Source: Chrysemys picta bellii (lineage: Eukaryota). From it: 64,000 nucleotides of DNA. Positions 33,389-64,000 of the stretch are shown in pieces. The stretch spans positions 32,488,001 to 32,552,000 of the forward strand of contig NC_088797.1 in NCBI RefSeq assembly GCF_011386835.1, given 5' to 3'. The position numbers and the translations under genes are program-made. The notes under the pieces are model-generated. The model saw only the letters and a list, made by a program, of their open reading frames with translations, did no database searches and had not been told where the DNA came from. How positions within the stretch are numbered: the first letter of the stretch is position 1; every line of letters begins with the position of its first letter.

Positions 33389-45105
<11,717 letters not shown>

Positions 45106-48160: not shown

Positions 48161-50660
48161 AGACTCTTACTAAGTGGGTGGATCAAGCTCCCTAAGCTCT
48201 CTTCTTACTGGCCTGGAGCTGTGGTCATGGCAATGGCTGCCTTGCCCATCCCAGGAGCCCTGCAGCACTGAAAGCTGCCTGGGATCAGGCAATGGGCGGT
48301 ACAGAAGTGTTTGTGTGTGCAGAGCAAATGACTAGGGCCCTACCAAATTCACGGCCATTCACGTGTTACAGCGGGATAACTAATGAGCATTTGCCGCCTT
48401 GCTGCAAAATCGTAGTGGAGACAAGGCACAGCCAGTTTTTGCCAATGTAGCAACATCATCCCCCCAATCTGGTGTGACCCCACCTATCTGTGTTACAGTG
48501 AAAGTTACAGAGCCTTGTCCCCATAGCGTTTTACAGCAAACGAGGGGGTTGTTGAGGGGCATTCAAGAGGTGTGGCTGGCAGCAAGTGCCTGAAATTGAC
48601 AAGAGAGACATTCAGGGCTGAATAGCAGGAACCTATTCTTAGCAGCGAGAGAAGGTTTTCTGTTCTACACAGGCTCTTATCCCACTCTCATCACTGCAGG
48701 ATCTTTGCATTATGCAATAAGACTAACATCTGCCCCATGGCGGTCATTCTTTCTCTTATCCTCTACCAAGGGGGAGAATCCTGCATGCCGTGGTTTGTTT
48801 AGGTAGGGTTGTGTCTATGTCCACACTGTTCTGTGTTTATGTCAGAGAAGTCAAGCAGGGTTGGGATGTTCCTTGTTTCCCAGAGGATTTTGTTCCACAT
48901 TTTCGGACCAGCCGCCGAGAAAGTTTGGTCTCCTGCACAGACAAACTTGGTCTCCTGCTGGCTTTCCCCCCATTTGATTTTCCTCTCCTTTCTTTCACCC
49001 TTGTACTCCCATGTCTTTGTAGATCTCCCTGCAAGCCTGGCACATTCCAGGGTTCTATGAATACAGACTATTGTGTTCTTTTAAAATTGCATTTAAGAAG
49101 TTGAGGTTTTATTAGCACAGGTAATAACAACAAATCAACACTGCTATTTCAGAGAGACCATTTAGGAAACAGCACTCATACGAAATCCCAGCTCCCGTCC
49201 ACAAGCCCCAACCATGTCTACATACATTGTTATTAATTATGTTGTGTATTGTGATGACGTCTAGAGTCCCAGTCATGGACCCCCATTGTGTTAGGTGCTG
49301 TACACATGCAGAACTGAAAGATGGTCCCTGCCCCAAAGAGCTTGCAATCTAAGGCCACATCTACTCTCAAAAGTTTTGCCAATAGTATTTTTGCCAGCAT
49401 ACGCGGCTGCTGTTCCAATGTCACCAGCATGGCCTTTGCCAGTACCGCGCAGCCTCACTGTGAGAGACTGTGTCAGCAAATGACACGCTGCACTGTGAGT
49501 AGGTACCTGTGCCTCCTGTGTCACTGTCCAGCACACTGCCTTGTGGGTCATTTTTGAAGTAGGGGCAGGGACTTTTTGTTCTGTTTGTAGAGCACCGAGC
49601 ACCCAGGGGTCCTGTCTAAGGTCCCTAGGTACTACGGTAACACAATATAAGAATAATGAATAATGCCAGCACTCCCTTGGGTGAGCACATCCCTTGGTCT
49701 AAATAAGGATAAAAGGTGTGTTTTTAACACGTTAAAATCCTAGTATAGACAAAGTGGCTGTAGGTTTAATATGGGTTTACCTTGACAAGCTAACGTGTTA
49801 AAACTGCATCTCACCTGGTCTGCACTATGATTCCACCATGTTAGTTAACAGATATGGGCTAACACGTGTTAAAATCACACCTTGTTCCCTAGGAAAGACA
49901 AGACTGGAGTGTAGCTAGTGATTTAACCTGCATCTGTGCTAAACAGACTCTGCCTAATGCCCATAGTGTACCCATCAGCTCCAGGGTTAAGAAAGGATAG
50001 TTCATGCCATGCCAGGAGCCGTAAGGGAGGTCAACCCATTATACTGGCATTAGAAGAATAAAGGTGATGACACTGAGCACTTTATAACACCCCAGAGATT
50101 TATGAAATCTCCCAATGCCTCTACTGTACTGTTGTACAGCCAGGGGCAAGACTGTGCATAGAACCCAGGAGTCCTGACTCCCAACACCCCTGCTTTAACC
50201 ACTAGACATCTCTCCTCCTGGAGCTGGAAACCAGGGAGCCTGACTCCCAGCCCTCTGCTCCAACCCACTAGACCCCACAGAATGAAAATAGATCTCAGGA
50301 GTCATGACTCTGAGCCCCCCTATTCTGATCCATGAGATCCCACTCACAGAACCAGGAATACACCTGAACCCCCACCCTATCCCCATCCTTCTAACCACTA
50401 GACCCCACTTCCTGCCCCTTGCTCTAACTACTAGACTCCATTCCCAGAACTAGGAGTCAAACCAAGACGCCTTGACTCCTAGTCCAGGCTATGCTTATGC
50501 CTTTGGGAAACTGGTTCACAGCTGAAGGTGACTGGGCATCGCTGCCTGTGATTGCATAAGTATCACAGTTCAGTGCCAAGCACACGGCATATGGAACAGC
50601 TTTTAAAGCCACACAGGTGGGATCCTATGCTGGGGAAAGCTGGACACAGCATGGGCTGTG

Positions 50661-52625
50661 CTACTGGACACAGCTGTTTTGGATGAAGAAAAGGAGGGGT
50701 ATTCCTGGGAAGGGAGGCGTGGGCATAAAACAGGTAACCCCTTCCTTCCCACCACTCAGGGTCACGTTGGTGGAGTGCAGCCAAGCCTCTAGGTCCTGCA
50801 AGCTGCAGTGGCAAAGCAGAGAGACCTCCTGGAGATTCAGGAATGCTAGTGCCTGGAGCGGCTGAAGAACAGATGGTGACAGGGTCACCAAGGGGTTACC
50901 CTGCAGCCCTAGCACCTGCAGGGAGTGCAGGTCCCGGAACAGCCCATCAGGAAGCATGGCCATGAGGTTCCCAGATAGGTCCAGAGCCTGGAGAGACACC
51001 AGACCCTGGAAGAGGCCCTCAGGTAAGGTCTGGAGATTGTTTCTGCTGAGGTTCAAGGCTGCCAGCCTGTCTAGATGGTGGAAGACATCCACACAGCCCC
51101 CTGCATTCCAGACGATATTCAGGGAGTTCTCGGAAAGGTCCAGCACCCTGAGCTGGCTGTGCCTGGGCATGGCTCTGTCCTGGTGCTCAGAGCACCTTGA
51201 GATCAGGTTGTGTGAAAGGTTCAGGAACTGCAAGGCAGGGATGCCCCTCAGCTCGTTCCAGAGCCCTCTCAGGTCTTGCATGCGGTTGGAAGACAAGTCG
51301 AGGAAGGTCAGATTCGTGGAAAGCTTCCCGATTCCCCAGGTGTCCTTGATCCTGTTCTGGCCCAGCAGCAGGCGCTCCAGGACAGGGAGCCGCCCTGGCA
51401 GCACGCGCGAGAGGGCATTGTCCTGCAGATTCAGCGTCCGCAGGGTCCTCAGTCCCTCCAGGGCATTGTGCTGGATGGCCCCAATGTGGTTGGACTTGAG
51501 GTTGAGGTGCAGCAGTGGGGAAGAGCTTAGGCTCTGGAGAGCCTCCATGTTCAGCTCCCCCAGCAGATTGTGGGAGAGGTCCAGGGTCCAGAGGTGCTGC
51601 AGTCCAGCAAAGGCCTCCCCACGGATCTCGTGGATCTGATTGGATGCCAGGCGCAGTGCACGCAGCTCAGGGAGACCCGAGAAGACCAAAGGCCCCAGCT
51701 TGGAGAGGAAGCCATGAGACATGTCGAAAGAGAGGACTCTGCTCTGGCTGAGCCCTGAGAAGGTGCTGGCAGAGAGGCCCCGCAGGTTATTGAACCCGAA
51801 CCCCCTCCCAATGGCCCCCGAGTGCTGCAACTTCAGATGCCGTATCTGGGCACCTGCCATGACCTTAAAGAACCGTTCAGCACTACCCACATCCCATGGA
51901 TTGGAGGATACATCCAGGGTTTCCACTGTGATGTTGTGGAAGGGACTGGGGCAGGAGTGGTTGTACCGAGGGTCCCTATAGGACAGCAGATTGGATGAGA
52001 GATCTAGGAGGGACAGGTGTTGTCCCCCGAGGTGGGTCAGATCCTTCCCGCAGATTGTCTTGATCTTGTTAAGCCGGAGCTGGAGGACAGCCAGCAGCTT
52101 TAAGCCTTGAAAAGAGGAATCGGGTCTCAGCCTCTTTATCTGGTTCCCTGTGAGATCCAGCCTTTTGAGGGACACTAAATCCTGGAAGTAGCCACCCTCC
52201 AGCACAGTCTCATCAAGGCCATTGGCATCCAGCAGGAGCACCTCGAGCTGCCGCAAGCCTGCCAAGGCCATGGGTTGGAGGCTCAGCTTCCTGTTGCCCC
52301 CGAGGTCCAGGAACGTGATGTTGGCCACCTTCTCAAAGGCCTTCTCTCCAATGGAGAGTGATCCCCCCAGCTGACATCCCAGAGACAGCTTCCTGAGCCT
52401 CTCCAGCCTGGGGAAGGAGGAGGCCGAGATGTTGGAGAGGAGGTTGAAATTCAGCAGAAGGATCTGGGTGGATGGGTCAATTTCTGGCAGTGTCTCATGG
52501 TGTTGAGCTTGGCAGCTGGAGACCACAGAAGACTGGACCCTGGAGGCGTGACAGCTCTGAACTTCAGCCAGGGCAGGACTAGATCCCAGCAACCAGAGCG
52601 CTAGGAGCCAAAGTTGTCTGAGCAT
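50661..52625 (-). CDS. TLR5: Toll-like receptor 5-like, soluble type (signal peptide + LRRs + LRRCT; no TM, no TIR), 654 aa
   Basis: Signal MLRQLWLLALWLLGSSPALA; TLR5-type LRRs LLLNFNLLSNISASSFPRLERL, GRGFGFNNL, FDMSHGFL, LDLSHNLLGEL; LRRCT CHCSL...TCFMP..SCVQ* with the stop right after the last Cys. Single coding exon after an acceptor at 52634. Confidence 0.9.
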   Translation of the reverse strand: MLRQLWLLALWLLGSSPALAEVQSCHASRVQSSVVSSCQAQHHETLPEIDPSTQILLLNFNLLSNISASSFPRLERLRKLSLGCQLGGSLSIGEKAFEKVANITFLDLGGNRKLSLQPMALAGLRQLEVLLLDANGLDETVLEGGYFQDLVSLKRLDLTGNQIKRLRPDSSFQGLKLLAVLQLRLNKIKTICGKDLTHLGGQHLSLLDLSSNLLSYRDPRYNHSCPSPFHNITVETLDVSSNPWDVGSAERFFKVMAGAQIRHLKLQHSGAIGRGFGFNNLRGLSASTFSGLSQSRVLSFDMSHGFLSKLGPLVFSGLPELRALRLASNQIHEIRGEAFAGLQHLWTLDLSHNLLGELNMEALQSLSSSPLLHLNLKSNHIGAIQHNALEGLRTLRTLNLQDNALSRVLPGRLPVLERLLLGQNRIKDTWGIGKLSTNLTFLDLSSNRMQDLRGLWNELRGIPALQFLNLSHNLISRCSEHQDRAMPRHSQLRVLDLSENSLNIVWNAGGCVDVFHHLDRLAALNLSRNNLQTLPEGLFQGLVSLQALDLSGNLMAMLPDGLFRDLHSLQVLGLQGNPLVTLSPSVLQPLQALAFLNLQEVSLLCHCSLQDLEAWLHSTNVTLSGGKEGVTCFMPTPPFPGIPLLFFIQNSCVQ

Positions 52626-53741
52626 AGTGGAACCTGCCAAAGAATAAGAACGATGTTACTCCACAGCACCCACTCCTGTAATGGGACATTTATACTGTGC
52701 CTGCTAGTGGTGCTAAGTGCAGGTACAACCCACACCCATTCTGTGCAGCATGCTAGCCCCCACCAGTGACGGCTGGGAGATATATAGTGGTTGATGAGGC
52801 TGCTACAGGCATAATAAAGCTGTCTCTCTTAGCCCAGGCAGTAGAGGTTCTTGCTTGAGATCCCAGGTTTGATTCCTACTACTAACAACCCACCCAGAGG
52901 ACTGGTGTTATACAGAGATAGCAAGATATCTAAAAGGGGACTGGTCTACTGCTATTGATTTTAGCTGGAAGGTGCTCAGACACCACTGTGATGGGCGGCA
53001 AGATAAAACCCATAGATAGTGGGCTTCTGCCTCTCCCTGGGACAGCAAGAAGGGTCTCCAGAGCTGGTAAGACTCTGTCAAAACATATGTTTTTTCTGAC
53101 AAAACGTGGCTTTTTGTCCAAGACTGAGTACTTTGTGGAAAATTTTCATTTCATGGAAAAATTTCCACTTGTCTGATTAAAAAACCTGGAAACTAAAAAA
53201 TGTTTCAGTAAAATAATGTTGGTTTTGGGTAAAAGTTGTTCATCTTTTGGTTAAAAATCAACTTTTTATCTTCAGTGTGTTTTCTTGGGTAATAATTTTT
53301 GGTTTTTGAAAAACAATATTTTTTAATGGAAAACTGGAAAAAATTGCCCCCCGTTTTCGTATAAATTTTTTCCTCACAGAAACAAGAACTTCCCACAGGA
53401 GCTGTAATTTATTAAAATAATAAAGACACTTGGCATTTTCTGAGCAGCTCTGCCTCTAACAGAGCCTGGGCTTGGGTCGAATATGGAGAGAGAGGGCCAT
53501 CCCAGGTGCTATGGGGCTAGTAACTGGACTCTTTGTGGGCTGGATAGGGTCTCAAGTGAGGTGTTTGTACAGCACCGGGCACAATGGGGCCCTGGGCCAT
53601 GACCGGGGCTCCTAGGTACTACTTTGATACAGATCATTAAGGTGGAAGAGGGTCTGTCTGTGATCCCTGCCCTGAGCAGGTTGCAGGGCAGGAGATCTTA
53701 ATCTGGGGGTCACAAGCAGGTGACTTCTCTTTCTTTCCCAA

Positions 53742-56700
53742 TTTAAGAACATAAGAACATAAGAATGGCTTTACTGGGTCAGACCAAAGGTCCATCTAGC
53801 CCAGAATCCTGTCTTCCGACAGTGGCCAATGCCAGGTGCCCCAGAAGGAATGAACAGAAACTCATCAAGCTCTGTCCCCTGTCGCTCATTCCCAGCTTCT
53901 GGCAAACTGAAGCTAGAGACACCATTCCTGTCCATCCTGGCTAATAGCCATTGATGGACCTATCCTCCATGAATCTATCTAATTCTTTTTTGAACCCTGT
54001 TATGGTCTTGGCCTTCACAACATCCTCTGGTAAGGAGTTCCACAGGTTGACTATGCGTTGTGTGAAGAAATACTTGCTTTTATTTGTTTTAAACCTGCTG
54101 CCTATTAATTTAATTTGGCGACCCCTAGTTCTTTTGTTATGAGAAGTAGTAAACAACACTTCCTTATCTACTTTCTCTACACCAGTCATGACTGTATAGA
54201 CCTCAATCATATCTCCCCTTAGACATCTCTTTTCCAAGCTGAAAAGTCCCAGTCTTATTAATCTCTCCTCATACGGAAGCCATTCCATACCCCTGATAAT
54301 TTTTTTTGCCCTTTTCTGAACCTTTTCCAATTCCAATATATCTTTTTTGAGATGGCACGACCACATCTGCACACAGTATTCAAGATGTGGGCGTACAATG
54401 GATTTATATAGAGGCAACATGATATTTTCTGTCCTATTATCTATCCCTTTCTTAATTATTCCCAGCATTCTGTTCGCTTTTTTGACTGCCGCTGCACATT
54501 GAGTGGATGTTTTCAGAGAACTATCCACAATGACTCCAAGATCTCATTCTTGAGTGGTAACAGCTAATTTAGACCCCATCATTTTATATGTATAGTTGGG
54601 ATTATGCTTTCCAATGTGCATTACCTTTGCATTTATCAACATTAAATTTCATCTGCCATTTTGTTGCCCAGTCACCCAGTTTTGAGAGATCCTTTTGTAG
54701 CTCTTCATAGTCTGCCTGGGTCTTAACTATCTTTAGTAATTTTGTATCATCTGCAAATTTTGCCATCTCACTGTTTACCCCTTTTTCCAGATCATTTATG
54801 AATATGTTGAATAGGACTGGTCCAAGTACCTACCCCTGGGGGACACCACTATTTACCTCTCTCCATTCTGAAAACTGATCATTTATACCTTCCCTTTGTT
54901 TCCTATCTTTTAACCAGCTAACAATCCATGAATGCACCTTCCCTCTTATCCCATGGCAGCTTACTTTGAATAAGAGCTTTTGGTGAGGGACCTTGTCAAA
55001 GGCTTTCTGAAAATCTAAGTACACTATATCCACTGGATTCCCTTGGTCCACATGCTTGTTGACCCCCTCAAAGAATTCTAGTAGATTGGTGAGGCATGAT
55101 TTCCCTTTACTAAAACCATAATTTGTTGACTCTTCCTCAACAAATTATGTTCATCTATATGTCTGACAATATTGTTCTTTATTATAGTTTCAACCAGTTT
55201 GCCTGGTACTGAAGTCCGTTTTACAGGCCTGTAATTGCCGGGATTACCTCTGGAGCCCTTTTTAAAAATTGGCGTCACATTAGCTATCCTCCAGTCATCT
55301 GGTACAGAAGCTGATTTAAATGATAGGTTACATACTACAGTTAGTAGTTCTGCAATTTCACATTTGAGTTCCTTCAGAACTCTTGGGTGAATACCATCTG
55401 ATCCTGGTGACTTATTGCTGTTTAATTTATCAATTTGTTCCAAAACCTCCTCTAATGATACCTCAATCTGGGACAATTCCTCAGATCTGTCACCTAAAAA
55501 GAATGGCTCAGGCTCGGGAATTTCCCTCACATCCTCAACCATGAAGACCGATGCAGAGAATTCATTTAGTTTCTCTGCAATGGCCTTATTGTCCCTTATT
55601 GTCTCCTTTAGCACCTCGATCGTCCAGTGACCCCACTGGCTGTTTAGCAGGCTTCTTGCTTCTGATGTACTTAATTGCTATTACTTTTTGAGTCTTTGGC
55701 TAGCTGTTCCTCAAATTCTTTTTTGGCCTTCCTAATTGTATTTTTACACTTCATTTGTCAGTGTTTATGCTCCTTTCTATTTTCCTCACTAGGATTTAAC
55801 TTCTACTTTTTAAAGGATGCCTTTTTGCCTCTCACTGATTCTTTTACTTTGTTGTTTAGCCACGGTGGCTCTTTTTTGGTTCTCTATGTTTTTTTATTTG
55901 GGGTATACATTTAAGTTGAGCCGCTAGTATGGTGTCTTTAAAAAGTTTCCACGCAGCTTGCAGAGATTTCACTTTTGGTGCTGTACCTTTTAATTTCTGT
56001 TTAACTAACCTCCTCATTTTTGTGTAGTTCCCCTTTCTGAAATGAAATGCTACTGTGTTGGGCTGCTGTGGTGGATATTACATTTAATTATATTATGGTC
56101 AATATTACCAAGCGGTCCAGCTATATTCACCTCTTGGACCAGATCCTGTGCTCCACTTAGGACTAAATCAAGAATTGCCTCTCCTCTGGTGGGTTCCAGG
56201 ACCAGCTGCTCCAAGAAGCAGTCATTTAAGGTGTCAAGAAACTTTATCTCTGCATCCCGTCCTGAAGTGACATGTACCCAGTCAATATGGGGATAATTTA
56301 AATCCCGCATTATTATTATTGAGTTTTTTATTTTAATAGCCTCTCTAATCTCCCTGAGCATTTCACAGTCACTATCACCGTCCTGGTCAGGTGGTTGGTA
56401 ATATATCCCTACCGCTATATTCTTATTATTAGAGCATGGAATTTCTATCCATAGAGATTCTATGGTACAGTTTGATTAATTTACGATTTTTACTTCATTT
56501 GATTCTACGTTTTCTTTCACATATAGTGCCACTCCCCCACCAGCACGACCTATTCTGTCCTTCCGATATATTTTGTACCCTGGTATTACTGACTTCAGAG
56601 TAACAGCCGTGTTAGTCTGTATCCGCAAAAAGAAGAACAGGAGTACTTGTGGCACCTTAGAGACTAACAAATTTATTAGAGCATAAGCTTTCGTGGACTA

Positions 56701-57310
56701 CAGCCCACTTCTTCGGATGCATATAGAATGGAACATATATTGAGGAGATATATATACACACATACAGAGAGCATAAACAGGTGGGAGTTGTCTTACCAAC
56801 TCTGAGAGGCCAATTAATTAAGAGAAAAAAAAAACTTTTGAAGTGATAATCAAGCTAGGCCAGTACAGACAGTTTGATAATAGGTGTGAGAGTACTTACA
56901 AGGGGAGATAGAGTCAATGTTTGTAATGGCTCAGCCATTCCCAGTCCTTATTCAAACCGGAGTTGATTGTGTCTAGTTTGCATATCAATTCTAGCTCTGC
57001 AGTCTCTCTTTGGAGTCTGTTTTTGAAGTTTTTCTGTGTATATATATCTCTTCAATATATGTTCCATTCTATATGCATCCGAAGAAGTGGGCTGTAGTCC
57101 ACGAAAGCTTATGCTCTAATAAATTTGTTAGTCTTTAAGGTGCCACAAGTACTCCTGGTATTACTGTATCCCACTGATTATCCTTATTCCACCAAGTTTC
57201 TGTGATGCCTATTATATCAATATCCTCATTTAATACGAGGCACTCCACTTCACCCATTTTATTCTTTAGACTTCTAGCAATTCTATTCTAGAAATACCAA
57301 TTTCTATTGT
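53742..57310 (-). mobile_element. Long CR1 LINE (endonuclease + RT, disrupted) with (TTCTTATG)n-type 3' tail
   Basis: ORF pieces DLNYPHIDW..EPTRGEAILDLVL (APE), [51 protein letters not shown]; tail AAGAACATAAGAACATAAG at 53742-63. Confidence 0.95.
56592..57155 (-). mobile_element. Young Penelope-like insertion (3' end plus inverted pLTR) inside the CR1
   Basis: TSD TGGTATTACTG (56581-91, 57156-66); ~120-bp inverted arms with 2 mismatches; spacer encodes the PLE C-terminus (KNRLQRETAELELICKLDTINSGLNKDWEWLSHY) on -. Confidence 0.9.
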
Positions 57311-57731
57311 GCTGTAAGGTGCAGGCACAAGTAAAGCCAGGAGGCTCCCCAGGGTAGCTGAGCATGCCTTTCTCTCCCATCAGTGTCCTCATATCCTGGC
57401 TACCTCAGGGACTGGGTACAGGGCACTGATCACTGGATTCCCTCTCCAGGGCAGTGACTGCTCGCAGTAACCAACAACTGCCCAGTAGCATATGAGAAAT
57501 GAGCGTGACCAGTCTCAGCTCAGCTCCCAGGGAACCAGGTGACCAGAACTGGCCCCTTCATCTCAGTAGAGGGCCGCAGGGACAGTGCTCCCCTCTAGCA
57601 GCCATACTCAAAAGGCAGCACCCAGGCATGCTGGCCGGGAAGCTTGCACCACAGGCATCCTGCTCTATCCCTTTGCAGAACTCCCCCTCCCACCCAGCAT
57701 CTCCCCCATCCCTACCAGACCCTCTACTCAC

Positions 57732-57945
57732 CCCCAGGGAGCGAAGATTTGTGCTGGAGACACCGCACAGCAGCCACGTTCACCACCTGCGCCCTCTGCC
57801 ATCCACCCGTCTGCTCCGGCTTTATTTAAGCCCCCACCACGGAAGAAGACAGCTGCTCCCAGAAGGCTCCGGCCCCCACCTCAGCTGCTGTTTACTCAGC
57901 GGGTGTTCAGGAACTTGCGAAATGGGAAGTTGGGGGAAATTCCCC
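57732..57945 (-). promoter_or_regulatory. Candidate soluble-TLR5 promoter and non-coding exon 1
   Basis: NF-kB GGGGAAATTCCCC 57933-45; C/EBP TTGCGAAAT 57915-23; TATA-like TTAAATAAA (minus) 57829-21; strong donor GG|GTGAGT at 57732/57731. Confidence 0.55.
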
Positions 57946-58485
57946 TCCTGGTCCCCTCCTGCAGTTATTGCTTCCTCGGGCCTTTGCGGTGAACGGTCGC
58001 GGGTCACCCTAGCAAGCTGGTGTGAGCGGCCTTACATCTTCTTGAGTCAATGAGCCGCAACCCTACTCTCAGCCCTGCTGCTCTAACCACTAGACATCAC
58101 TCCCCACCCAGAGCTGGAACAGAACCCAGGAGTCCTGACTCCCAGTCTCCTACTTATACCAGTAAACGTGGGAAAAGCTGGCCACTTGGACGGGGGCTCT
58201 TGTGACCTCCGGATGCTTCAGACCAAAACCTTGTGCAATCTTGGCCCCTCAGGCAGATTCCTTCTTCATTCCCACTGGTGACCAGCTCCAAGCTGGAAGA
58301 GTGAGGCTGGAGAACCCCTGGGTTGTTGCTGGTTTGGACACACCCTCCCTGTGTGTGCATGAGCAGATCACTGAACCTCTCTGGGCCTCAGTTTCCCATC
58401 TGTGAAATGGGAAGAATAATTGTTCCTCTGCCTTGTCTATTTAGATTGTCCTGGGACAGGGGCTGACTCTTATTGTGTGTCTGTG

Positions 58486-63007: not shown

Positions 63008-63853
63008 TCAGCCCCTCTCACAGATGACCTCAATGACACTCTGCTCCATGGGCACAGGGTCCAGGCAGCGGTGGGCTGTGCTGCCCACGATTTCATCTAG
63101 CAGGAAGTGCACCAGGTTCTCATCGCAGACAAAGCGCCACAGGTAGAGCTGTAGATAGTAGCAGTCCACCTGGATCTGCTGCAGGCCGTAGCGCCCGAAG
63201 GTCCGCAGCCGCACGCACTCCAGGAAGGTCTTCAGGCTGATCTTGATGATGCCGGTCAGGACGGAGACCTGGGGGGTGGGTGGGGAGGTCATTCAAGCAC
63301 TGTCCCCTATGGGCTTGGAGGACACAGAGGGGAAGAATCACCCCCAGAACTCCCTATGTGGCAGAAGTCTCTTGTGGAGGAATGAGGCCAGGTCTGGGCT
63401 GCACCCCCAGCCGGAGGGGCAAGGGGGTCAGTGGCAGCTAGGGAACAGGGAAGTGTGAGTGAACATGGAGTGGGTGTGTGACAGCTCTGGAGGGAAGGGT
63501 CCCCAGAGGACGGGGGAGGTGTGTGGGGAGCTCTGTTTCTCCTTTAATGCACTGGTGGTGGGGGGGGGGGGGGGGCACTGAAGATTAATAGAGCCTAAGG
63601 CCAGAAGAGACCACTGTGATCAGATGGAGTGAGTGTTGGGAGTTGTGTCCCTGCTCTGATGTACTGGGGGGGAGGGGAGGGGGAGAACTAGAGGACAAGC
63701 TGAGTTTAGGGGGCTCTGATCTGTGGGGGGCTCTCCCCCACCCCCAGGGTGGCAGCTCTGCTCACCTTGTTGAACTCCACGGGGCTGAAGATGTCGATGC
63801 GCTCAGAGAACAGCTTCTGAATGTTACTCAGGAGGTTAGTGTCCAGGGGGGCA
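63008..63853 (-). CDS. VPS51: VPS51 (GARP/EARP subunit), last two exons: 63853..63766 and 63268..63008
   Basis: [29 protein letters not shown] / [36 protein letters not shown]...VIEVICERG*; AATAAA on minus at 62752-47. Confidence 0.95.
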
Positions 63854-64000
63854 CTGCACGGGGAGGGGTGGGGGGAGAGGCAGAGACAAGGGGTTACACA
63901 CTCACCAGCAGCCAGGAACCCCATTGCACAGCAGGGGATTGGATCTGGGCAGCCCTCCTCACCTGAGGCTGCGCCTGGGAGTGAAACACTGGGTCAAAGC

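Follow-up and report, generated by a model that had tools for sequence, protein, structure and literature searches.

Turtle TLR5L, an anchor-less TLR5 paralogue next to TM7SF2 and probable secreted flagellin binder

Introduction

Does a reptile genome hold an intact gene for a soluble TLR5, and if it does, where does that gene come from and what might its product do? The question is raised by a stretch of 64,000 nucleotides of Chrysemys picta bellii (NC_088797.1, positions 32,488,001 to 32,552,000), which we call the window and number from its first letter. An initial annotation of the window, made from the letters alone, described an open reading frame for a soluble TLR5 and, by implication, treated it as new and as related to the soluble TLR5 (TLR5S) of teleosts.

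The gene is turtle TLR5L, a predicted secreted relative of TLR5 without a membrane anchor; TLR5L is already published and annotated in turtles, lizards, and amphibians, and the gene is not a discovery. Liu et al. (2019; PMC6946030) described soluble "TLR5L" in amphibians and reptiles, with a TLR5L_Chpi of 654 aa; their references include painted-turtle XM_005307990.1 (654 aa) and Xenopus XM_002937504.4 (653 aa). Turtles and the anole are named in the literature as TLR5L carriers, and the implied novelty does not hold, since the exact window protein is also on record in NCBI/UniRef. RefSeq carries the 654-aa protein for many turtles, and the 654-aa proteins of sister turtles are named "toll-like receptor 5." The study of anole TLR5 by Voogdt (2016) makes no mention of a soluble form. 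We also considered the published Pelodiscus "PsTLR5" as a record of the window gene and rejected it, because the protein in that paper is the 889-aa membrane form.

Results

The TLR5L coding sequence lies on the minus strand at 50661..52625, with the ATG at 52625 and a TAG at 50663-50661, and encodes 654 aa. The initial annotation had placed its 654-aa frame at precisely this coding sequence, stop codon included, and the signal peptide, TLR5-type LRRs and complete LRRCT that it described were all found in the frame. Residues 1-20 (52566..52625, minus strand) read as a putative signal peptide, with a basic start, a hydrophobic core and Ala-Leu-Ala before Glu21; in the AF2 model, this segment forms an N-terminal helix (residues 2-13) followed by a low-confidence linker. 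Pfam assigned the protein to LRR families only. The LRRCT cap extends from Cys605 to Cys652 (50670..50813, minus strand) and retains all of its cysteines (605, 607, 632, and 652). The protein had been said to end right after the last of these, and it does so two residues on, as Cys652-Val-Gln-stop; in our alignment, the position of the stop is kept to within a few residues across tetrapod orthologues. Among solved relatives, the human TLR5 ectodomain ranks first (3j0a, E 2e-96), in an alignment that reaches the last LRRCT cysteine, and zebrafish TLR5b second (3v47, E 4e-59). The AF2 model has a pLDDT of 89.6; in Foldseek, its highest-ranking match is 3v47, a complex of zebrafish TLR5 with flagellin (target-normalised TM 0.83).

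We searched for a membrane anchor and a TIR domain in several ways. The highest 19-residue Kyte-Doolittle mean in TLR5L is 1.4, compared to 2.6 for the TM helix of a turtle TLR5M, and a search of the window with full-length TLR5 proteins returned matches to the ectodomain only. The TM and TIR tails of 27 TLR5 proteins gave only noise against the whole 64-kb window, with the best match (E 0.016) on the opposite strand and 39 kb away. TIR-like coding sequence was likewise absent from the window and from up to 10 kb downstream at seven orthologous loci. The initial annotation had reported no TM or TIR coding sequence between the gene and TM7SF2; the absence extends over the entire window.

Transcript structure was read from assembled contigs, in which rare isoforms could be missed. 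Spliced RNA contigs came from two studies of organism A, one study of organism C, and a related turtle (Logan contig L001); three of these four runs were taken as RNA because of splicing and an empty intron. Contigs from three runs give a two-exon mRNA in which exon 1 ends at 57732 and exon 2 starts at 52633. Exon 1 is a 5'UTR exon that spans at least 57732..57858 (minus strand), with the donor gtgagt from 57731; nucleotides 1-129 of L001 align to it, and the loose ends at 52634 of RNA contigs from runs X1, X5, and X13 are the reverse complement of its last 30 nt. The spliced contigs define intron 1 (52634..57731, minus strand; GT..AG, 5.1 kb), within which RNA depth is zero at 52678-52791. 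Exon 2 (49090..52633, minus strand) comprises 8 nt of 5'UTR, the whole coding sequence, and about 1.55 kb of 3'UTR. In runs X1, X5, and X13, single contigs of 2.6-3.6 kb follow the genome without a break between 52634 and 49600; those of X1 and X5 continue for another 468-510 nt, and an AATAAA lies at 49113-49108, at the end of the unspliced 3'UTR. Overall, the TLR5L mRNA is abundant, spliced, and polyadenylated, and the contigs run unspliced through the stop to the AATAAA, with neither the lack of expression nor the splicing to a TM/TIR exon that the initial annotation had raised as objections.

An insertion of roughly 3.6 kb that is not in three other turtle genomes occupies 53740-57311 within intron 1. 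Judging by their translations, two open reading frames inside it (53941-54528 and 55078-55614) resemble reverse transcriptase. The 3'UTR contains an interspersed repeat (50150..50410, minus strand), marked by a pile-up of very many unrelated contigs. Contig "joints" at 50160-50410 were considered as splicing and rejected on the basis of their non-canonical ends, the unrelated contigs, and repeat-like depth. A promoter block at 57907..57950 (minus strand) is near-identical in four turtles from the three major turtle lineages, compared to 81-87% identity region-wide, and includes a putative kappaB-like site (GGGGAATTTCCCC) and a putative C/EBP-like site (TTTYGCAAG).

Both neighbours of TLR5L were located by tblastn and are on the same strand. 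The downstream neighbour is TM7SF2, a sterol reductase of the ERG4_ERG24 family (33392..44794, minus strand), found with the C-terminal part of a fused Lerista model (P0021). The last two coding exons of the upstream neighbour, VPS51 (63011..63876, minus strand), were found with residues 665-786 of a sea-turtle protein (P0122). The order VPS51, TLR5L, TM7SF2 on one strand is shared by the window, Emydura, Carettochelys, and Lacerta; TLR5L precedes TM7SF2 in Pelodiscus and the frog Ascaphus, and the sturgeon Huso has TLR5L, TM7SF2, and a zf-HIT gene in that order. Positional orthologues of TLR5L were therefore found from sturgeon to squamates. Three shark TLR5 loci (P0063, P0100, and P0064) have no neighbour gene within 10 kb and are uninformative for synteny.

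Orthologues of about 650 aa occur in turtles (85-96% identity), squamates, tuatara, caecilians, axolotl, frogs, and sturgeon and paddlefish. In a gene tree with TLR5M and TLR5S, the TLR5L clade (22 rows, SH-aLRT 100) stands apart from both, includes the short sturgeon and paddlefish genes, and places another turtle as sister to the window protein. The stem branch of the clade is long, at about 0.43 changes per column. The tree is unrooted, and a duplication before the gnathostomes and one on the bony-vertebrate stem share a single unrooted shape. Among turtles, pairwise dN/dS is 0.23-0.38 (binomial p for the deficit of non-synonymous changes, 7e-7 to 3e-25), which indicates purifying selection rather than the ratio near 1 that had been raised as a concern. 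Five aligned turtle coding sequences, sampled across the deepest splits among turtles, each keep an open frame of 653-654 codons, and intact proteins from further turtles are in RefSeq.

In TLR5, the loop of LRR9 forms a pocket for flagellin Arg89/90, and its contact residues have been given (PMC5247705). By alignment to zebrafish TLR5b and human TLR5, the corresponding loop of the window protein is residues 269-282 (SGAIGRGFGFNNLR; 51780..51821, minus strand). It has the same length as the human loop and a GxGFGFxN core close to it, with 6 of 10 positions identical and two conservative changes. Outside the framework, no element is as strikingly invariant over 37 TLR5L orthologues as this loop, in which all 37 share G273, F276, F278, and N280; the pLDDT of the loop is low, as expected of a flexible one. 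Nearly all aligned TLR5M, shark, sturgeon, and frog sequences have Asp-Pro-Asp after the loop, with a few close variants, whereas this motif is replaced in the TLR5L of amniotes (GLS in turtles), caecilians, and salamanders, and the loop stem of amniote TLR5L has one residue extra. TLR5 interface A is unconserved even between zebrafish and human (PMC5247705) and so offers no score for TLR5L.

Discussion

We estimate a probability of roughly 75% that turtle TLR5L is an old TLR5 paralogue, consisting of a signal peptide and an LRR ectodomain only, whose product is a secreted flagellin binder that modulates TLR5M. A secreted flagellin sensor or decoy, as the initial annotation proposed, is the most reasonable reading. 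The invariance of the LRR9 loop in 37 orthologues makes flagellin binding likely, as far as sequence can tell, and because TLR5L has neither a TM helix nor a TIR domain, it would not signal on its own. The protein would be secreted, would bind flagellin monomers through the LRR9-loop pocket as membrane TLR5 does, and would modulate signalling by TLR5M from the extracellular side. It might pass flagellin on to TLR5M and so amplify the NF-kB response, like trout TLR5S, or it might sequester flagellin as a decoy. The conserved kappaB-like and C/EBP-like sites in the promoter may make transcription inducible; frog TLR5L goes up after bacterial infection (PMC12179096). Selection has kept TLR5L for hundreds of millions of years, and the gene is well expressed in turtles.

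Other explanations of the locus were weighed against this one. Given that assembled contigs lose rare isoforms, there is room for a minor splice form, and the gene could in principle be a membrane TLR5 whose TM and TIR segments lie further downstream, on exons of their own that the search of the window missed. We regard this as very improbable: no TIR-like coding sequence occurs in the window or in the 10 kb downstream at the seven orthologous loci, the mRNA continues unspliced past the stop for about 1.55 kb, the exons of TM7SF2 start 5.9 kb downstream of that stop, and the LRRCT is the end of the protein in all of the dozens of annotated orthologues. A gene without the signalling half of a TLR could also be a truncated, decaying TLR5 duplicate, that is, a pseudogene whose open frame has survived by chance. 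This explanation has practically no chance of being correct, as it is refuted by the selection measured among turtles (p down to 3e-25) and by the abundant spliced mRNA; in addition, the frames are intact in the five aligned turtles and in the RefSeq proteins of more, the stop site is conserved across tetrapods, and orthologues have been retained from a time before ray-finned and lobe-finned fishes diverged.

Because TLR5L shares the architecture of teleost TLR5S, and one frog paper showed the two as sisters, it could be taken for a TLR5S orthologue retained in reptiles. Such orthology is exceedingly improbable, as teleost TLR5S is nested within teleost TLR5M in two places, teleost tlr5S is not beside TM7SF2, and constraining TLR5L and TLR5S to group together costs 393.6 lnL units (AU p 2e-51, in one of two tests whose groups were named after tree inspection). 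The turtle gene thus belongs to a different, older lineage than the teleost genes to which it had been linked by implication. It is unlikely, but deserves consideration, that TLR5L is a conserved secreted protein that no longer recognises flagellin and instead has another microbial or host ligand, or serves membrane TLR5 solely as partner or inhibitor. Liu et al. call the ligand unknown (PMC6946030). The long stem branch, the loss of Asp-Pro-Asp beside the LRR9 loop in amniotes, and the extra residue in the loop stem are consistent with a changed ligand. So is the response that infection with E. miricola, which is believed to be non-motile, raised in frog TLR5L. Against these points, the loop that forms the flagellin arginine pocket is invariant in the 37 orthologues and matches human TLR5 at 6 of 10 positions, and the best sequence and fold matches overall are TLR5. 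A secreted flagellin binder remains our preferred reading.

The divergence of ray-finned from lobe-finned fishes dates to more than about 430 million years ago. Since sturgeon and paddlefish have positional orthologues, the TLR5L lineage predates tetrapods, and the conservation of the VPS51, TLR5L, TM7SF2 order from sturgeon to turtles makes TLR5L older than the literature states. Liu et al. put its origin within amphibian history (PMC6946030); we place it no later than the common ancestor of bony vertebrates, which corrects both that paper and PMC9857387. More tentatively, and with somewhat less confidence than not, we suggest that TLR5L was anchor-less before the ray-finned/lobe-finned split, rather than being a late amphibian copy, and that it may be the twin of TLR5 from the 2R whole-genome duplications. 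The region where TLR5L adjoins TM7SF2 is one that we take to be of the 11q13 type on the human map. Human TLR5 is in 1q41-q42, near the TM7SF2 paralogue LBR and near members of the paralogue pairs CAPN2/CAPN1, ESRRG/ESRRA, and MARK1/MARK2. The twin reading is drawn from this arrangement; our literature search found no publication on LBR and TM7SF2 as ohnologues. If the gene is this ancient, mammals, archosaurs, and teleosts each lost it on their own, and soluble TLR5 evolved anew, and separately, in teleosts and in sharks. To our knowledge, mammals and birds have no gene of the TLR5L kind.

Compared to known systems, the window gene is a member of published TLR5L, from which it shows no substantive difference: length, architecture (signal peptide, LRRs, and LRRCT), clade, and neighbours are the same, and purifying selection is comparable (dN/dS of 0.236 for reptile TLR5L in Liu et al., PMC6946030, and 0.23-0.38 for the turtles here). 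Membrane TLR5 (human model 3j0a; zebrafish TLR5b-flagellin structures 3v47 and 5gy2) has an ectodomain fold of similar size with LRRNT and LRRCT caps, and TLR5M and TLR5L both carry the GxGFGFxN core in LRR9 and an SHGF motif in LRR10, at about 38-40% identity. Unlike TLR5M, TLR5L has no TM helix or TIR domain, lies at the VPS51/TM7SF2 locus, and has Asp-Pro-Asp after the loop replaced.

Teleost TLR5S, also a TLR5 ectodomain that lacks both TM and TIR, provides a functional model for TLR5L: trout TLR5S is a secreted, flagellin-binding acute-phase protein, made mainly in the liver, that augments NF-kB activation (Tsujita 2004, Tsukada 2005; PMC6043800). The tlr5S gene arose during the teleost radiation and shares a chromosome with tlr5 (PMC8882821, PMC9857387). 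In contrast to TLR5L, it is an independent truncation of teleost TLR5M that is located near TLR5M, and it has about 35% identity to the turtle protein. Elasmobranchs have short forms as well, termed "incomplete TLR5-like" or TLR5S (bioRxiv 10.64898/2026.03.23.713620). The short Scyliorhinus TLR5 (P0064, 648 aa) resembles TLR5L in being an anchor-less ectodomain that ends just past the LRRCT, but it is nested among full-length shark TLR5 genes and is therefore a third, independent truncation. Considering TLR5L together with teleost TLR5S and the short forms of sharks, soluble TLR5 has evolved at least three times, and this repeated origin suggests that an extracellular flagellin binder has been repeatedly advantageous.

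Structure and expression of the turtle gene

The minus strand carries an uninterrupted ORF of 654 codons (ATG at 52625, TAG at 50663 to 50661), exactly where the initial annotation had placed an intact soluble TLR5. The CDS is contained in a single exon, and the window holds no runs of N. LRR families are the sole Pfam matches in the 654-aa protein, which begins with a signal peptide predicted by sequence reading (residues 1 to 20, minus strand), has eight N-glycosylation sequons, and ends in a complete LRRCT (Cys605, Cys607, Cys632, and Cys652), with the stop two residues later (Cys652-Val-Gln). Among solved structures, the human TLR5 ectodomain is closest (3j0a, E 2e-96), aligned up to the last LRRCT cysteine, followed by zebrafish TLR5b (3v47, E 4e-59), with TLR3 and other LRR proteins far weaker. 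An AlphaFold2 model with 37 orthologues as input had a mean pLDDT of 89.6, and its top structural match was the zebrafish TLR5-flagellin complex. The initial annotation's description of the ORF is confirmed, with the signal peptide as a prediction.

We found no TM-like stretch in this protein, in which the maximum 19-residue hydropathy mean is 1.4, compared to 2.6 in a turtle membrane TLR5 (TLR5M). Three full-length TLR5 protein queries matched the window only at 52514 to 50670, and the TM and TIR tails (last 250 residues) of 27 TLR5 proteins returned only noise across the whole window, the best match (E 0.016) being on the opposite strand and 39 kb away. TM7SF2 exons, located by protein matches, lie downstream on the minus strand (44794 to 33392). 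As claimed, the tail search of the window detected no TM or TIR sequence between the two genes, and in seven other species the first 10 kb downstream of the orthologue yielded none either. A very G+C-rich segment with long ORFs overlapping on both strands (38576 to 39232) lies in the gap that separates the TM7SF2 exon matches at 42970 and 36974, and is possibly a CpG island or low-complexity sequence.

One Logan RNA contig (L001, 2287 nt), derived from a related turtle, aligns to the window in spliced form, with nt 1 to 129 at 57858 to 57730 and the remainder at 52634 to 50474. A gtgagt donor begins at 57731, and an acceptor with a pyrimidine tract and cag ends at 52634; together with L001, these sequences place the end of exon 1 at 57732 and the start of exon 2 at 52633, which leaves 8 nt ahead of the ATG. 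Contigs of four runs were compared with 49600 to 53000; among these runs, X1 and X5 come from two studies of organism A, and X13 is an RNA library of organism C. Single contigs of 2.6 to 3.6 kb from these three runs are colinear with the genome between 52634 and 49600, stop codon included, and those of X1 and X5 extend 468 to 510 nt farther. Each has a loose end at 52634 that matches the end of exon 1 in reverse complement, and intron depth is zero at 52678 to 52791; splicing and the empty intron together show that the runs only guessed to be RNA really are RNA. An AATAAA at 49113 to 49108, 1547 nt past the stop, agrees with the contig ends. Thus, the mRNA consists of two exons, with the entire CDS in exon 2 and no further coding exon reached, as far as contigs that may miss rare isoforms can tell. 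Apparent joints at 50160 to 50410 were rejected as splicing, because they belong to a 3'UTR repeat. This interspersed repeat (50150 to 50410) attracts very many unrelated transcript contigs, and X5 has a 26-nt deletion within it at 50367.

The initial annotation had named splicing to a TM or TIR exon, lack of expression, and dN/dS near 1 as results that would count against it. The first two are contradicted by the spliced RNA contigs, which end without another coding exon. As to the third, five turtle CDSs sampled across the deepest turtle splits are intact (653 to 654 codons), with pairwise dN/dS of 0.23 to 0.38 and a nonsynonymous deficit at binomial p of 7e-7 to 3e-25. At 51341 (and 51342), C stands in place of the window's T in each of the four RNA runs, giving Ala in the reads versus Thr in the window at codon 429; Ala is also found in Emydura, Pelodiscus, and Carettochelys, whereas L001, which is tortoise-like, shares Thr with the window. 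Either the site is polymorphic or the reference individual carries a private allele.

RefSeq models of 683 to 686 aa (Malaclemys, Gopherus, and Chelydra) start in exon 1, in frame through the splice, placing at least 29 residues before the signal peptide. In the window, their start codon is replaced by ACG (57810 to 57808), which leaves the 654-aa form as the only one possible there. If transcription starts upstream of it, an out-of-frame ATG at 57802 to 57800, not conserved in Pelodiscus or Carettochelys, would give a short uORF that overlaps the main start. Upstream of exon 1 on the minus strand, a 44-nt block (57950 to 57907) that is near-identical in four distant turtles contains kappaB-like and C/EBP-like sites; as candidate promoter sites, these would fit inducible expression. 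Intron 1 contains an insertion of ~3.6 kb (53740 to 57311) that enlarges it from ~1.5 to 5.1 kb, and whose minus-strand ORFs (53941 to 54528 and 55078 to 55614) appear, by reading, to resemble LINE reverse transcriptase. Emydura, Pelodiscus, and Carettochelys lack the insertion in this intron, and it is therefore lineage-specific.

Relationships and age of TLR5L

This gene is the already known TLR5L and not a new find. TLR5L was defined, in amphibians and reptiles, as a short soluble form of TLR5, with painted turtle TLR5L (654 aa) as a reference in the supplement, none in alligator, a reptile dN/dS of 0.236 (9 sequences), and a ligand called unknown (PMC6946030). Turtles and anole carry TLR5L, and frog TLR5L rises after infection (PMC12179096). 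The window's exact protein is present in NCBI/UniRef, as are 654-aa "toll-like receptor 5" entries from Caretta, Natator, Lepidochelys, Chelonoidis, and others.

Relatives of ~650 aa without TIR were gathered by word search. Identity to the window protein is 85 to 94% in turtles, 51 to 59% in squamates, 52 to 55% in caecilians and axolotl, 44 to 50% in frogs, and 44 to 47% in sturgeons and paddlefish, compared to about 38% for membrane TLR5 and about 35% for the soluble TLR5 of teleosts (TLR5S); the tuatara relative is a partial sequence. Several are misannotated: Rhinatrema TLR5L is named a VPS51 isoform, one from Platysternon "activating signal cointegrator 1 complex subunit 1," TM7SF2 is joined to TLR5L in the Lerista model, and the window protein's 90% cluster also includes VPS51 proteins.

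The initial annotation was correct that teleosts have TLR5S and mammals only membrane TLR5, and the gene tree it proposed recovers a soluble clade, although not one that includes teleost TLR5S. In an unrooted 51-row maximum-likelihood tree, the short proteins of tetrapods group with those of sturgeons and paddlefish in a single clade (SH-aLRT 100), whereas teleost TLR5S is nested in teleost TLR5M, at two positions. In two AU tests, whose groups were named once the tree had been seen, forcing TLR5L and TLR5S together cost 393.6 lnL (p-AU 2e-51), and constraining the short sturgeon proteins to join teleost TLR5 cost 70.8 lnL (p-AU 1e-7). We therefore reject orthology of the turtle gene with teleost TLR5S. 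Microsynteny agrees with the gene tree: the window shares with Emydura, Carettochelys, and Lacerta the order VPS51, TLR5L, and TM7SF2, all on one strand; in Pelodiscus and a frog (Ascaphus), TLR5L precedes TM7SF2; and the order in the sturgeon Huso huso is TLR5L, TM7SF2, and a zf-HIT gene. The stop falls 0 to 4 residues past the last LRRCT cysteine in all tetrapod members and a few residues short of that position in sturgeon members. An anchor-less catshark protein (Scyliorhinus canicula P0064, 648 aa) is placed among full-length shark TLR5; with TLR5L and teleost TLR5S, this makes three independent origins of soluble TLR5.

The literature dates the origin of TLR5L to amphibian history (PMC6946030), and non-teleost fishes are said to have one TLR5M only (PMC9857387). 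Sturgeons and paddlefish have a positional orthologue, given the tree, AU test, and conserved neighbors, which indicates that anchor-less TLR5L predates the ray-finned/lobe-finned split. TLR5L is thus older than the literature states, a modest new point. Human TLR5 lies at 1q41 near LBR, the TM7SF2 paralogue, in a region paralogous to 11q13; this map offers a positional hint of an origin that may reach as far back as the 2R genome duplications, although the unrooted tree fits a later origin equally well. The word search of annotated proteins yielded no bird, crocodilian, or mammal protein among the TLR5L-type matches, an absence among annotated proteins that does not imply loss.

Predicted flagellin binding and mode of action

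In TLR5, flagellin D1 places its hot-spot arginine in a cavity formed by the LRR9 loop (PMC5247705). The turtle loop is nearly the same length, with the core GRGFGFNNLR compared to GAGFGFHNIK in human TLR5, and SHGF in LRR10, at the zebrafish K303 position, is as in human TLR5. Across 37 TLR5L sequences from sturgeon to turtle, there is no variation at G273, F276, F278, and N280 and almost none at G277. The loop is the sole low-confidence internal stretch of the AlphaFold2 model, consistent with its description as flexible until flagellin binds. Nearly all of the aligned TLR5M, shark, sturgeon, and frog sequences have DPD after the loop, but amniote, caecilian, and salamander TLR5L have other residues there. 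Despite this replacement, the conserved loop makes it likely that turtle TLR5L binds flagellin.

The initial annotation had proposed a functional secreted flagellin sensor or decoy retained in a reptile. This proposal is partly supported: the gene is functional, and its product is probably a secreted flagellin binder, whereas the novelty and the link to the teleost gene that it implied are not supported. Without TM and TIR, TLR5L can act only outside the cell. A decoy role would be equally compatible with the data as an extracellular amplifier role, in which TLR5L would act like the tested precedent, trout TLR5S, a flagellin binder that augments NF-kB activation (PMC6043800).
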